A stretch of 64,000 bases of DNA from the NCBI GenBank assembly GCA_977016875.1, contig CDRNST010000095.1:806001-870000 (forward strand), given 5' to 3'. The position numbers were made by a program, and so were the translations under genes. The notes under the pieces are model-generated. The model was not told the DNA's origin, ran no database searches, and saw nothing but the letters and a program-made list of their open reading frames with translations. Origin of the DNA: Pavona decussata. Its lineage: Eukaryota. Below are positions 13,385 through 20,227 of the stretch, piece by piece. The stretch's first letter is position 1. Each line of letters starts with the position of its first letter.

Positions 13385-15307
13385 TCAGTATTTTCTCATG
13401 TTGGTGTTCGTTGTGTTCAAACCATACGATTTTAGATTATTTTTTATGGTCCTAACATCAATTAAAATACCAGCCACAACGCAAATGGCAGTAATGAAAA
13501 GAATCACCCAAAAACTGATTTTCAGATATTTAAGTAACAGACGGCGGTCTTTTTCGCCTTCCCGTCCGTTCGTGTAATCCTTAACGAGCCTAATGCCCTT
13601 TCTCTGGCATATTTTTTCCAAGTTTTCGGCGATTGCTGGTCTTCCTACAAAGTAACAGCGACAGTGTTTATTGGCAGACTTGAGAGCTTTCTCGAAATCT
13701 ATTCGGCCATTGATGAGCTGTATTTGGGTGTCGGCTGTTTCAGCTACTTCGTGCTGTTCTTCTTCTCCTGCGGGACTGGTGACGTAAAACTGGAAATTTA
13801 CAATTGCAGTGTTCTTTTCTTTGATCTTTTTCAGGAGCTCGTCGATTGACTCACGCATTAAGTAGTAAAATGCCTTGCATCTTACCGAGTAGAAAATATC
13901 AATTTTATTGGGTTTATGTGGTGTTTCTGTTTTGTGTGCTAGAAAGCTTAGGACGTCCAAGAGATAGCCACACCCAGACCCAGTTGCGAACAGTGTGTAA
14001 TGGAACGGCGATCGTGTCTTGTCTGATTCTTCAGCGACCTGATTGCACAGCTGCCAAACAGAGGAACGATAAGGGCCCCACGTGTGAAAAGTAGACGAGT
14101 TGTTATCGTTGGCTAGCCAGCTTGTCCAAGGGAGGCACAATTGCTCTTCGTCTTCCATTACAGATACCACCAAACCAATGTCCCATGTTGAGTCTTGCGA
14201 TAAATTTGCAAAGGTCGTAAAGGGATGCGATCGCTGAGGAACAACTCCTGAGCTGCCTTTAATCTGATGGTGAAGATAGTATACATCGCCAACGGCATAC
14301 TCCACGTCCTTGTCCAGTTTGATATACACAACGATGTACTCGTTGTTTTCAACGACTCTCTTCCGCACAATGCGACCATGGTGATGTCGGTAAACCCAAA
14401 TGGAGAGTGCTCGGTCCAAACACCAGATGATCAGCACGGGCAGATTTACCACCTGCGACAAGCCATGGGTGATCTTTCGAATGTTGTCAATAGCATACCA
14501 GACACCAGCAAATAGATGCAAGGCCATCGCCAACGAGTAGCTACGTTGGGTAGCGTAATTTGATCTGCTCAGAGGGAAGAAGAAGCAGAACAACACGATG
14601 ATGACCATAAAGCGATAGATCTCGTCCGCGGTGAGGTGTACTCCAGTGTGGTCGTTGAAAGTCCAATTCTGTACGGCTGCGGGATCCCAGAACTCGGACC
14701 AGTTCAAATGATCTGAGTAGCTGCTGTAGTTGAACGTACTTGGAGGGTAGTACTTCAGTGCCGTGCCATCAACAAGAGGCGGGAGAAAGATCACAAGGAC
14801 GTGGGCAAGGGACGGGATGGCAATCAGGAAGATGCCAGCCAATCTGTGGATTCGTACATGAACTTCACGGATACTATCCATCGTGATCCACCTTGGAGCA
14901 ATCTCGTTGATGAAGTTTGGTAAACACCACATCATCGTGTAGAACATCAGATTCTGGGAAGTTATGATGAGGCGAGCGGTGACGGCCCACACGATGTTAG
15001 TAATCGTCTCACCTATGTTGGTCCCCCAGAGGCGTCTGGGAAGTTTTCCTCCTCTGCCAAGCACCACGTCACCTTTAAGGACAAAGTGATCGACCACGCA
15101 CAGCGTTGTTAAGACAAAAAAGACAATCCAAACCAAGGCCTCATATGAGATGGAAAATCGTCTTCGACGGGGATGGACGCTGGATGAAGTCGCATTCGGT
15201 GAAGGCAGATGTTCAGGGATTTCCAGAGAAAAGATTGTTGGTGATGGTGTAACTTTGTTTTTTCTTGACGAGGGTCGATACCTTTTCTCATGAAAGTCTT
15301 CTGTTTC
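13385..15307 (-). CDS. Terminal exon of the NOX/ferric-reductase-like gene (entire TM + FAD + NADPH core)
   Basis: The 583-aa ORF of the track extends 57 codons upstream in frame to the acceptor ttatgcaaaacAG at 15309-15308; stop TGA at 13385. Confidence 0.92.
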   Translation of the reverse strand, partial: ETEDFHEKRYRPSSRKNKVTPSPTIFSLEIPEHLPSPNATSSSVHPRRRRFSISYEALVWIVFFVLTTLCVVDHFVLKGDVVLGRGGKLPRRLWGTNIGETITNIVWAVTARLIITSQNLMFYTMMWCLPNFINEIAPRWITMDSIREVHVRIHRLAGIFLIAIPSLAHVLVIFLPPLVDGTALKYYPPSTFNYSSYSDHLNWSEFWDPAAVQNWTFNDHTGVHLTADEIYRFMVIIVLFCFFFPLSRSNYATQRSYSLAMALHLFAGVWYAIDNIRKITHGLSQVVNLPVLIIWCLDRALSIWVYRHHHGRIVRKRVVENNEYIVVYIKLDKDVEYAVGDVYYLHHQIKGSSGVVPQRSHPFTTFANLSQDSTWDIGLVVSVMEDEEQLCLPWTSWLANDNNSSTFHTWGPYRSSVWQLCNQVAEESDKTRSPFHYTLFATGSGCGYLLDVLSFLAHKTETPHKPNKIDIFYSVRCKAFYYLMRESIDELLKKIKEKNTAIVNFQFYVTSPAGEEEQHEVAETADTQIQLINGRIDFEKALKSANKHCRCYFVGRPAIAENLEKICQRKGIRLVKDYTNGREGEKDRRLLLKYLKISFWVILFITAICVVAGILIDVRTIKNNLKSYGLNTTNTNMRKY

Positions 15308-18300
15308 CTGTTTTGCATAAAAGAGAGATAAATTTCTGTTGGTAAAATGTACATTATGAGGCTACCGTTCTGCTATAAAACTAAGCTTTGTTATTAATGT
15401 TTAAAATAATGAAACAATTACCCTTTTTAATCTTTTGGAATATCGCCTGATTTTATCCATCTTGGCCTACGGCCACGTTGGCTAAGTATCAGGGGATGTT
15501 CCGCGATATAGTTTTTGATTATACCATGGTATACCATGGCCTAGAAATAGCAGCCATTAAATCGTCTTCTTGTCTTTCTTGCAAAATAAAAACAGCAATA
15601 TCTAGCAATATTTTGTGGGTGTTTTAATAAGCGTACTTCACTTTCTTCTGCAGGTATTATAAGGATTTTTATAGCCGACTGGGCATTATGTACCCTTTGC
15701 CTATCTAGCACCTCATATCCACCAACGCACGATAGTGGAATAGTTGTTTGTTTGCAAAAAGAGAAGTAAAATTTTAGTAAACGAAAAAATCTGTACCTTC
15801 AAATCGTGCACAAACTCTTGATATTTGAAACCCATGTCGTCTGTGTACATGTCCATGATTATCTAAAACAGAAATGTAACGTGTTACAACAGTTAACACT
15901 TGTTTTTTAGTTACTTAAAACCTTAGCCAACTGTCAGTGACTACATGATTCAGTAATGATGATTTGCAATCGTTTTAGATATTTAGAAGACTTAAATTAT
16001 TATTACGATAGATTATGAGGGATCACCATTGAAGCTCCCTAAGTATCGTGAATTGAACTAAAATAGAAGAATGGGAGAAACCAAAAGAAGAGCAGATGCA
16101 TCCAAATAAATAAACGTTAGAACGAAAAACCGAGGGGAAGCAGACCAAGCAGCTAGCTGACGAGCTGCAATATCTCTTCCCTTATGACTGTTGTTTGATT
16201 GTTTGCTAAGGTGTTTTTTGTAGAGGGGGTAGAGGACATTTCTTATCAACTAGGGGACGTTAAATGCATTAATGCCCGGCCAAACGATTGAAACATCTTC
16301 CACCATTGTTGATTGTTCGACGATGTTGCGCAGTGTTAAACGAGGTGGATAAACAAATGCAACACTTGGACCAAAGGGTGTGGGTGTGTTCTTAATAGAT
16401 TCTGAAAGGTTTATGCAAAACGGGCTTAAAAGAAAGGGTTCGTGAACAGAAAAGCGATGACTATGGTTTTGCTCTGGATAATGCATACCCGTGACTGTTA
16501 AAAAACTAAGGAGCGCTGTCATGAACCAATTAATAGAGCAACCTAGGAATTCCATTCACCTTTAAATCATCTTCTTCGATGATCTCACTGAGCAGCTTAA
16601 ATAATTCTTCTGCTTGGGTGTCCTGTGCATCCTCATCAATTTCATTTCTTGCAACAAAAATGAGAAAGCAACCGTTATGTTCCTGTGCATTGCAGGGTTA
16701 CGGCTGTCCGTTACTGAGAGGTAACGTATTTGTTGTCTTTGTGTTAACTGTAGCATGCTCGATTCTGAACAATTGCGACGATTTCCTTTAGGGCAGTCGT
16801 GACCGTTTACAAATACATCAAGTTTCAGTTCAATGAAAACTTAGGCAATGTTGCATTTTGCAGTGAAATAACTTGAAGTCATGGATACAAATTTGCACCA
16901 GTTAAGACCGCTTACTATGCACGTACTGGCTTTTGGTAAATTAGTCTCACTATTTAAAGTGTTATTTAGCTCTCCAAACATGAAACCTTATAAATTTATG
17001 AATAAAAATACAGACAACTTAAACAAGATCATGTTTTACTAAGTATGCTAAGAATTCTGCTTATAAAAATGTCGCTTAATATTTTGCATGTTTCTATTTA
17101 TTTTTTCTGGATGTAAAACATAGCCATGATCCAACAAACGCGTTGATTGGTGACCCTAGGTGTTTGTTTTTCTCATAAAGAAACCGTTGCACAAACGAGC
17201 TACATGACTGTACTGGCAAATAACAGGTATACAAACACTTACTTATTGGGATCCTCTGAGGACGTTTTCGCCAACAGATCTTTTATCTCGACGTTGCTCT
17301 TCAATAACTGAGCAACTTTCTTTAGTATCACTTCCTTTTGCTCTTCATTGGCGGATCTTATGCTGTGAGGATTAGCAGTTTTCTCTGTTGAAACAAGGAA
17401 AAAAACATCACGCTGTTTCAGTTTAAATCAGGTTTGGTCTGAAGCCAGCAGAAACACACAAATGAATACTTTAAAATAAAAGCTGTTTGTCTAGGATGTT
17501 GTATTAAGCTTTAATTTTGATGAAAGGGCAATAGCACATGTTAGAATACTAATCAGATGTAAGACGACACCAAAACCTTCCAAAATGCCCTTTCTGTTAT
17601 CTTTCAACACGCAAATGGTTTGAAGCGTTGATAAAGAAAGAAATGCACGAGTGAGGTATTGCTTGGATATTCAGCCCCTAGCCTGTTGAACAGCATACAA
17701 AAAGTAAGCAAAATAAACAAACAAGCGCTCTTAAGCCGAAAAAGTCAGTAAAATTTTATATCCTTCCAACGGTAGTCGAACGGCTATGACGTTCCAAGAG
17801 TCGATCGTTTGGATGCGCTAACCGCAATGCTATCCTGAGATCGTAAGCGAAGTCATGTTCCCTCATAGTGCATTGGTTATAATAGAACAGTCAACCGCCT
17901 TCTTGTAAAATCGAGAGCATAGAGTGGATCATCACACTTTGATATTGATACGGGAAGTATTTTCTCCAATGTAAACGACAAATATGAATAAAGAAGTCAA
18001 TAAATAAATAAATAAATAAACAATTAAATAAACGATGTAACGAACTACCATCCATACCAGACTCTGCATCATGTAGAAACTTGGGCCAGTTACAAGAATT
18101 TGGACTTCTCAGATTGCAGTAGTGGGTCCGAATTTCTTCCACCTCGTCATCAGTCAGGATTTCTTCAAATATCTCCTTGCAAGCTTTCTTAAAGTCACTT
18201 GTGGTAACGAACCCTTTTCTCAGAGGATCATACTCGTGAAACGTCTCCTCTAGCTTTAAGTGAGGGAAAAAGAAAAATATATTAAGTGAGGTTTGTTCAC

Positions 18301-20156
18301 TTTGTTAGGATAACGGGAGTGCTATATTTCCGATGGGAGTTGAACTAGAGCGAATTTATACCATTTCAAACACCGCGTTAATACTTTGGCCACTAGGTCA
18401 GTTGTGATGGTGATGGTGACAGTGATCAGGTGATAGTGGTGATGGTGATCATGGATGGTGGTGAAAATGATGATGGTGATGGTAATTGTAATGATCAGGA
18501 GATGATGATAATGGTGATGGTGATGCCAGTCCAACCCAACCCCTTAACCAATTTTGGAACGTGAACAGTTTTTAACTACAGGCGTAGACTGCCCACTCCC
18601 CCTTATTTATGTAACGGTGGTGGTGATGGTGATGTTGAGGGTTGTCATGATGTTGATATGGTTTCTTTGATGATGGTGATATGCTGATTGTGATCCTGGT
18701 GATGGTGGTCGGGTTGTGATGGAGGTGGTTGTAGAAGTGATGGTGGTGGTGATGAGCCGAGGTGGTGGTGGTGATGATGATGATGTTGATGATGATGATG
18801 ATGATGATGATGAGCGTGATGGTGGTGGCGGCGATGGTGATGGTGATACAGTTCCAAACCAATCCCTCAACTAATTTTGGAACGTAAAAGGGTATTAAGT
18901 ACAGGCGAAGACTGCCCAATCTCCATCTCCATGTGATATTAATCTCTCTTTCTTATATTATGACCATTAAAATAAGCTTAACTGCATGAGAATTTTTGAA
19001 GGGCCAAACAAGGGTTTACACGGTATAAAATATAATCCTACCATAATTCCCTTGTCACGAACGAAGTTCCTGACTTTATCCATCACCTCATCTATTGATA
19101 TGCTCGTCGAGCTGCGAGACGATGTTTCTCCTGTTGATTTCTGCCTGAAGTGTGAGAGGAAAAAAACAAAGTTACCTTGACTGAGGAAACAAAATTGACT
19201 GAAACGTTTCTTCTCAAATAATGCATGATATGATATCAGCTGCGAAAGCAGGCTAAACTGGCCAACGTAAAACGACATGAATTTGACGTTTCGATCACTC
19301 GCCCTTCTTCTCTGACAAAGGATTAACGCTTCAAACACCAGATTCCGCTATAATAAGGAAATCGCCATGATGAATAGGAGCATTGCCATTAAGGGGTCCG
19401 AATTTTGCCCTCCAGCCTGCTAGATAGACCTCTCACAATCTCATTCCACCGGATCGGATTACGTTTTCAAAAACAATGTTACTGATCTAGGACAATCTAA
19501 ATTTCTTCCTGGTTGCCCTAGTGCTATAATTGCGGTAAAATGTCATTGGGAAGAGAATCAATGTTGTTATGAAATGGAATTTCATTATTTAATGACTTAG
19601 TGAGTTGAGGTTTTTTAGTTGAACGTTTTAGAACTTGTCACCGTTACGCTGATTCAAGGTCTAGGTTATCCTACATAAACGTTTTGTAGTTTATAAGTGT
19701 TGTCGTTCTGTTGATGGTTATTTTAGTGTTTTAACAGCTCTCGAAATAGAAATGCTTGGCGATCCTTGTTGACCTTGGCTTGGTCCACCATCAAATTTCG
19801 AGTTCTTAGTTTGTTGAATATAAACTATCGTTATTTCCAGGTTTTTCATTGGATACCTGTTATTTCAATGTGTGGTCGTGTAGGTTTATTTGGGTTTTCT
19901 TAGTTGAGTAGAAAACGGAATTCTGAAAGTTCCCACGGTCAGTTAACCCAAACATGTCAAAAAAAAAAAATCAGACTATTTAATTGCGAACATTCAAGCT
20001 TGTAGTCAGTCAGTTGCCACACAAGTTTAAAGACCCATTTTTTCCCAACACGGATCTCACGCTAGTTTACTAACTTATTAAGTCATACTCACAAAAAGAC
20101 CTAATAAAACAAATAAATAAATAAATAAATAATACTCACCTTTCACTTCCTGACAT
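13385..20156 (-). CDS. EF-hand-containing NADPH oxidase / ferric reductase (FRD superfamily)-like membrane flavocytochrome, 844 aa, 7 coding exons
   Basis: Exons 20156-20140, 19144-19042, 18253-18058, 17384-17243, 16647-16560, 15862-15797 and 15307-13385 join in one open frame (2535 nt) with GT-AG introns of matching phase. N-terminus has EF-hand-like repeats (FHEYDPLRKGFVTTSDF). Core has 6 TM with two His pairs, FAD motifs HPFT and GPY, and NADPH-domain motifs ATGSG, GRIDF and FVGRP. Confidence 0.88.
18400..18920. repeat. Two-copy intronic duplication of a (GAT/GGT)n tract plus short unique tail
   Basis: Trinucleotide tracts each followed by ccaa..ccc..aattttggaacgt..tacaggcg.agactgccca (~18530-18600 and ~18850-18920). 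Confidence 0.85.
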
Positions 20157-20227
20157 GTCAGTAAGATCAATATAACCTGTATGTATAAATACAATGGTTA
20201 ATACGTTTCGAGCCGCGAGGGGAAATA

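Follow-up and report, generated by a model that had tools for sequence, protein, structure and literature searches.

A coral gene joining CFAP115/EFCAB6-type EF-hand exons to a single-exon core of putative NOX/ferric-reductase type

The 64,000-nucleotide (nt) stretch of DNA considered here (the window) lies on contig CDRNST010000095.1 of the coral Pavona decussata (assembly GCA_977016875.1, positions 806,001 to 870,000). Its minus strand carries, from position 20156 to 13385, a gene assembled from two unrelated parts: a block of small exons encoding a module with the EF-hand fold, and one long exon encoding a predicted membrane flavocytochrome of the NOX/ferric-reductase type. A first-pass annotation made from the sequence alone had described the locus as such a chimera, and the analysis presented here supports that description. 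The gene model, rebuilt by hand, has seven exons of 17, 103, 196, 142, 88, 66, and 1923 nt (the last including the stop codon); all of its introns run from GT to AG, and the frame is open through a product of 844 codons. This model reproduces exactly the one first put forward, including the ends of its two EF-hand units, NWPKFLHDAE and KYQEFVHDLK.

All seven exons are read from the minus strand. Exon 1 (20140..20156; 17 nt), read from the sequence, supplies the start codon plus 5 codons, and the 5' untranslated region (UTR) extends at least to about 20171. Exon 2 (19042..19144) encodes a leader rich in Ser/Thr along with the first helix of EF-hand unit 1, and matches at positions 14-62 of the N-terminal profile A3. 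The first of these ends, NWPKFLHDAE, closes exon 3 (18058..18253; 196 nt, phases 0/1), which encodes an EF-hand pair of the CFAP115/EFCAB6 type with a YDPLRKG loop. The degenerate unit 2 is spread over the next three exons: exon 4 (17243..17384; phases 1/2) encodes a linker and the first helix of the unit, exon 5 (16560..16647; phases 2/0) its degenerate EF loop and a helix, and exon 6 (15797..15862; 66 nt, phases 0/0) its end, MYTDDMGFKYQEFVHDLK. Exon 7 (13385..15307; 1923 nt) contains a further linker, the entire flavocytochrome core, and a C-terminal helix in one open frame.

The splicing of these exons is documented by contigs from four public sequencing runs of the same organism that were placed on positions 15100-20200. 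Three of the runs (X1-X3, from two studies) are RNA-like, a type that was guessed, and the fourth (X11) is DNA. Contigs of X1-X3 cover the exons and leave the introns almost uncovered, and they include the joints 15307/15797, 15862/16560, 16647/17243, 17384/18058, and 18253/19042. The first of these, a junction singled out for confirmation when the gene was first described, splices the EF-hand exons to the large exon. RNA-like contigs with a loose end at 19146 read on into the reverse complement of 20142-20171, which corresponds to exon 1 and its 5' UTR. All six junctions of the gene are in this way represented in the RNA-like contigs. None of them occurs in X11, the contigs of which cover the introns. 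The coral gene is real and expressed.

Two further intact copies are found on the same contig outside the window, 53 and 129 kilobases (kb) from the window gene (G000:C95:766617-768536 and 690685-692601; loci L002, L003, L009, and L010). Both have open frames, the same upstream EF-hand exons, and a single-exon core, with core protein identities of 97% and 95%. At the sites that distinguish the paralogues, X1 contigs carry the letters of the window copy and X3 contigs carry paralogue-type letters; transcripts of both copy types thus exist, and their splicing is the same. In another coral, a transcript contig of 3943 nt encodes an uninterrupted orthologue of 866 amino acids with both parts, and annotated full-length orthologues of 837-867 amino acids are present in Desmophyllum, Oculina, Montipora, Acropora, and Stylophora, thus in complex and robust scleractinians alike.

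Within intron 2 of the window gene, positions 18322-18919 include two copies of an element of about 60 nt. A long microsatellite of the CAY/ACC type, which in several frames spells His or Thr runs, follows each copy; these stretches were treated as repeats in read mapping. At 19546-20058, within intron 1, the summed depth of the X11 contigs amounts to 5-10 times the depth of the adjacent bins, suggesting a high-copy repeat, and one X11 contig skips positions 19673-19843, a length difference of 171 nt.

The front-end module was characterized by searching the exons of the window gene one by one, with database orthologues (P0012, P0002, and others) serving as full-length proxies in the N-terminal alignment and the fold model, and with a profile of nine coral N-termini. 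Against the PDB, this profile finds CFAP115 in several doublet-microtubule structures (1.5e-43, 4.4e-37, and others, with six to eight repeat matches each), EFCAB6 at 3e-12 to 3e-10, and Chlamydomonas FAP115 at 1e-6, with calmodulin above 0.03. Exon 3 alone, in a single-sequence search (phmmer), matches CFAP115 at 2.7e-12 and EFCAB6 at 0.014, and the fold model of the module (predicted local distance difference test, pLDDT, 70.8) retrieves the same CFAP115 and EFCAB6 chains. Profile, fold, and exon 3 alone agree with the earlier impression that the module is EFCAB6-like rather than NOX5-like. Pfam gives sub-threshold EF-hand matches only, here and in all orthologues (e.g., EF-hand_7 in exon 3 at 8.4e-5, below the cut-off), and EF-hand_11, the DJBP model, matches the module weakly (0.012-0.066). 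A word search with the N-terminal 195 amino acids returned two coral fragments only, and an atlas feature search returned generic EF-hand clusters (scores of 0.89-0.90), which are no more than a weak lead.

CFAP115, FAP115, and EFCAB6 (DJBP) are ciliary microtubule inner proteins, and the coral module has the same EF-hand-pair unit of about 100 residues, with the same D-x-x-R-x-G loop and W/Y-x-x-F-x-x-D end. These relatives are soluble proteins of 6-8 or more units, whereas the coral protein has two units only, the second of them degenerate, fused to a membrane enzyme. The loop of unit 1, YDPLRKGFVTTSDF, has Leu and Lys at positions 3 and 5, and the first loop of unit 2 lacks its Gly. Because the EF loops of both units are without canonical Ca ligands, canonical Ca2+ binding by the module is unlikely, and the units would be pseudo-EF-hands.

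A search of the P. decussata genome with the N-terminal profile returns the three copies and only one other locus, a CFAP115-like multi-repeat gene on contig C26 (G000:C26:1530879-1552178, minus strand). This gene spans about 21 kb and has many CFAP115-type units in many small exons, one of which matches CFAP115 at 1.1e-33; an EF-hand_11 search of the same genome marks other loci (C104, C233, and C80) and not this one. The exon pattern of the coral module matches that of the C26 gene: four consecutive C26 exons are collinear with exons 3-6 and share all of their phases. Exon 3 and its counterpart (1537773-1537968, VEEYFQDFDPLRHG...HTDIEV) are both 196 nt long with phases 0/1; exon 4 measures 142 nt against 202 nt in the C26 exon ending ...FQDFDK (phases 1/2); exon 5 measures 88 nt against 85 nt in the C26 exon that follows (phases 2/0); and exon 6 and its counterpart, ILQSRYSDDIGFNYIKFLDDLQ, are both 66 nt long with phases 0/0. 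The exon 3 pair shares 31% of its residues, the exon 6 pair 45% (10/22). Shared order, shared phases, and partly exact lengths point to copying of an exon block at the DNA level (exon shuffling). Since no more than 31-45% similarity is left between the two sets of exons, this copying would be ancient. The last copied exon ends in phase 0, the same phase as the acceptor of exon 7. Recruitment of the front end from a host EF-hand repeat gene, as first proposed, is supported by this correspondence of exons 3-6. In most EF-hand units of the C26 gene itself, the split falls inside the loop or immediately ahead of it.

The core was analysed as the 640-amino-acid product of exon 7, together with a profile of 32 relatives. 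In a Pfam scan, this product matches NAD_binding_6 only (25.8 bits, cut-off 22.2; 1.2e-5); an NCBIfam scan gave no match, and a single-sequence PDB search (phmmer) found no NOX and nothing else relevant. The 32-relative profile, searched against the PDB, reaches the dehydrogenase domain of Cylindrospermum NOX5 (csNOX5) at 4.2e-5 and human NOX5 at 0.011. An AlphaFold model of the core (pLDDT 60.7) has as its best Foldseek matches DUOX1 (1.5e-13), NOX2 (4.7e-13), NOX5 (3.8e-12), and SpNOX (1.9e-10), over 560-627 columns. Only profiles and fold recognise the core, which on this evidence appears to be a remote flavocytochrome of the NOX/ferric-reductase type.

Helices in the model and invariant columns in the 32 sequences mark a six-helix membrane domain (14390..15145, minus strand, as for the other features of the core). 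Its four invariant His residues, H154 (14846-14848), H169 (14801-14803), H264 (14516-14518), and H281 (14465-14467), sit on helices 3 and 5 as two pairs, an arrangement that would suit two putative hemes. A dehydrogenase domain (13568..14380) follows, marked by invariant columns, with HPFT (14216-14227), GPYR (14066-14077), and ATGSGCG (13967-13987). The four His residues, HPFT, GPYR, and GxGxG (G443/G445) are invariant across the 32 family members. After the part of the domain predicted to bind reduced nicotinamide adenine dinucleotide phosphate (NADPH) comes an extra C-terminal hydrophobic helix (13454..13519; columns 1260-1290 of alignment A1), modelled within a long helix; it is present in the cnidarian sequences, coral and hydrozoan, and not in those of brown algae.

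The domain order of the coral protein, EF-hands and then a NOX-like core, is that of NOX5, and the gene could on this account be taken for a divergent coral NOX5 orthologue. This reading is already refuted and deserves practically no credence. A single-sequence PDB search with the core finds no NOX, its profile reaches NOX5 in the dehydrogenase domain only (4e-5 to 0.01), the module is far closer to CFAP115 and EFCAB6 than to calmodulin-like EF-hands, and hexacorals are reported to be without NOX5 (PMC13069887). Neither half of the protein groups with metazoan NOX5 in the PDB searches and profiles. The first-pass annotation would have had its chimera dismissed if both halves had done so, or if the EF-hand exons had not been spliced to the large exon, and the results go against both.

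Word searches with the core give identities of 64-80% in corals, about 50% in hydrozoans, and about 27% in brown algae. An exhaustive profile search yields 519 cluster representatives, 136 of them below 1e-30. Named members of the family are the foraminifera Bolivina and Nonionella, the rhizarian Artemidia, a bicosoecid, the brown alga Ectocarpus, and the ctenophore Mnemiopsis; many more are marine metagenome sequences. To judge by these sequences, the core is a deep and patchy eukaryotic branch of the NOX/ferric-reductase superfamily, so far unnamed. In a maximum-likelihood tree of 85 rows (aligned with hmmalign to the family profile; unrooted), cnidarians form one clade with support of 99 in the Shimodaira-Hasegawa-like approximate likelihood ratio test (SH-aLRT). 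This clade divides into four hydrozoan and eight anthozoan rows as sister groups, with the window sequence among the scleractinians. The bicosoecid is the next branch to the cnidarians, and brown algae and Mnemiopsis fall in two other major clades. A forced grouping of cnidarians with the Mnemiopsis group is rejected by the approximately unbiased test (p-AU 5.6e-5; the group was chosen after the tree had been seen, and the tree is unrooted).

The EF-hand module has a much narrower distribution than the core. It was not found in the hydrozoan, ctenophore, brown-alga, or bicosoecid members. The Mnemiopsis locus likewise has no such exons, and none lie upstream of the hydrozoan genes over a span of 6-8 kb; the locus L008 does carry the EF-hand exons. 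The fusion is thus present in Scleractinia and one close relative (L008) and absent from hydrozoans. The hydrozoan orthologues (Hydractinia LOC130649170 and Clytia) have a core about 50% identical with the same motifs and the same C-terminal helix, but the EF-hand module is missing and three phase-1 introns interrupt the core. Elsewhere in the family the front domain is either missing or, in two rhizarian sequences, of another kind. These two, P0059 and P0065 (Artemidia motanka and a relative), have a prolyl isomerase domain of the FKBP type at the N-terminus, which represents a second, independent front-end fusion. The Mnemiopsis leidyi member (L011:3001-5874) lies within the span, presumably within an intron, of a LolA-like gene on the opposite strand; surveys credit Mnemiopsis with a single NOX5 only (PMC9524095).

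Intron content varies widely within the family. The core is one exon in all three P. decussata copies and in the relative L008 (55% identity). The Hydractinia core has three phase-1 introns, at codons 127, 446, and 572, and the Clytia core has introns at the same three places, all in phase 1 (loci L005 and L007). The Ectocarpus core gene has 15 introns, none exactly at the hydrozoan positions: two positions that lie near each other in the alignment of Hydractinia and Ectocarpus proved, when mapped exactly, to be 2-5 codons apart and to have different phases. The Mnemiopsis member is a single exon of 957 codons, and uninterrupted open reading frames (ORFs) occur in many metagenome members, so a single-exon core is not peculiar to corals. 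In the P. decussata genome, at least one canonical NAD_binding_6 gene, on C132, yields only short partial matches, the pattern expected of a NOX split by introns, and a Pfam Ferric_reduct scan, which is insensitive to intron-split genes, gave no match. Set beside three introns in hydrozoans, none in the ctenophore, and 15 in the brown alga, the single-exon coral core may be ancestral, or it may derive from retroposition or intron loss. The core is not a relative of NOX1-5 and DUOX that has shed its introns; it belongs to an old family apart, where uninterrupted ORFs occur commonly.

The same comparison bears on the origin first suggested for the core, namely that it came intronless, whether by horizontal transfer or as a retrocopy, and that EF-hand exons of the host were captured afterwards. 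Such an origin would explain why the core is a single exon in corals and L008 and has three introns in the hydrozoan orthologues; it also suits a nearest non-cnidarian relative that is a bicosoecid protist and not a ctenophore, the grouping of cnidarians with the ctenophore being rejected, and the capture of host exons is supported by the C26 match. Anthozoa and Hydrozoa share the core in one clade, however, which makes it at least as old as their common ancestor; a recent arrival in corals is therefore contradicted, and any transfer would be older than the cnidarian ancestor. The single exon may be the old state, with the hydrozoan introns as later gains, since uninterrupted ORFs are common in the family, and the topological argument is blunted by an unrooted tree, a test group named after the tree had been seen, and the fact that ancient paralogy gives the same topology. 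Retrocopy marks would not be expected to persist after so long. Before the cnidarian ancestor, ancient paralogy with losses and old transfer fit the topology equally well, and arrival by retroposition or transfer followed by exon capture, although conceivable, seems rather unlikely overall.

Loss of introns from an older fused gene is a different route to the same structure. Intron loss mediated by reverse transcriptase leaves a gene with an intron-rich 5' end and an intron-free 3' end, and the coral gene has this pattern. A cnidarian ancestor might accordingly have had EF-hand exons together with an intron-bearing core; recombination with a partial cDNA would then have removed the 3' introns in corals, and the front end would have been lost in hydrozoans. 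The introns common to Hydractinia and Clytia, hence old, would agree with such an ancestor. More events are needed, however, the module occurs in no non-anthozoan member, and no hydrozoan intron position is exactly shared with the brown alga. This history is improbable.

The reading that is probably correct is that a membrane flavocytochrome of an unnamed NOX/ferric-reductase branch received a CFAP115/EFCAB6-type exon block in the anthozoan lineage and that the gene was later triplicated locally. The steps would be as follows. In the anthozoan lineage, DNA-level copying of an exon block from a ciliary EF-hand repeat gene of the CFAP115/EFCAB6 type presumably set that block before the single-exon core. 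Splicing joins the block to an acceptor that precedes the first membrane helix by about 55 codons, and the protein thereby has an N-terminal module of two EF-hand-pair units. To judge from the conserved motifs and the fold, the enzyme may pass electrons from NAD(P)H through flavin adenine dinucleotide (FAD) and two hemes across the membrane; the acceptor outside would be O2 or a metal ion. The most likely role of the module is to regulate or position the enzyme by way of protein contacts, not by canonical Ca2+ binding. The whole gene would then have been triplicated locally, with at least two copy types transcribed.

Several points count against this reconstruction. The EF-hand module could date to the cnidarian ancestor instead, with loss in hydrozoans, and the similarity of 31-45% traces the block to a CFAP115/EFCAB6-type gene rather than to one exact repeat within it. 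The exon 7 product has no match to the Pfam models Ferric_reduct (PF01794) and FAD_binding_8 (PF08022) at E up to 1, with weak Ferric_reduct matches of 16-18 bits in some distant family members, and the structure model of the core is mediocre, as its pLDDT of 60.7 indicates. The His pairs have unusual spacings of 15 and 17 residues, compared with 14 and 13 in NOX2 (a by-eye reading). Finally, NOX enzymes that reduce O2 are said to be set apart from metalloreductases by His119, a non-ligand His at +4 after the second helix-3 His, and by Thr178-Gly179, a T/S-G pair in helix 4 (PMC3591440). Read by eye, the coral core has Ile at +4 after H169, and no TG is seen in its helix 4. Because these oxidase marks were not seen by eye, the acceptor is left as either O2 or a metal ion.

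Comparison with known enzymes places the coral protein beside the EF-hand-regulated NADPH oxidases NOX5, RBOH, DUOX, NOXC, and the sponge DspNOX, all of which combine an N-terminal module of the EF-hand fold with a six-helix heme domain and an FAD/NADPH dehydrogenase domain in a similar core fold. Unlike these, the coral core lies in another deep branch that is undetected by single-sequence search and by two of the three Pfam NOX models, its EF-hands come from the CFAP115/EFCAB6 family, with no Ca ligands in positions 3 and 5 of the loop, and the gene has the unusual His spacing, the extra C-terminal membrane helix, and the single-exon core. Convergence on the NOX5/RBOH architecture, as the first-pass annotation phrased it, therefore applies to the domain order and not to EF loops that lack canonical Ca ligands. 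Deep-branching protist and algal sequences described as unclassified NOX-like or pre-NOX/FRE-like, including stramenopile ones, belong to no canonical NOX subclass and are said to have no EF-hands (PMC9421330, PMC3591440). Unclassified NOX-like sequences in Cnidaria are also mentioned, without EF-hands (PMC9421330); they may or may not belong to the coral core family, and the supplement of that study showed only NOX123 and NOX4 entries for Stylophora.

The combination of CFAP115/EFCAB6-type EF-hands with a NOX-like core was not found described in the searchable literature, and no paper linking CFAP115 or EFCAB6 to NOX was found in the literature searched. Scleractinians are credited with NOX2 and NOX4 only, and hexacorals with no NOX5, by a survey whose filter demands three Pfam domains (PMC13069887). 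Because the family shows only one of these three domains, coral NOX surveys would miss the gene. It is expressed, occurs across complex and robust scleractinians, and is triplicated here, and it is therefore a candidate for superoxide production or for iron or copper reduction in corals.

At a broader level, the front end of the unnamed NOX/ferric-reductase branch differs by lineage, with FKBP in Rhizaria and with EF-hand units in corals. In the coral gene, the "EF-hand plus NOX" domain order would have been put together independently once more. The gene would also be a traceable case of exon shuffling, with a donor family (CFAP115/EFCAB6), an identifiable copied block, visibly conserved phases, and a single-exon recipient. 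More tentatively, reef corals, which are reported to be without NOX5 and DUOX, might have independently built a regulated NOX-type oxidase from EF-hand units of a ciliary microtubule-lumen protein and an ancient orphan flavocytochrome. In that case, an enzyme overlooked by domain-based NOX surveys would supply extracellular superoxide in a regulated way, or reduce metals, at the coral surface.

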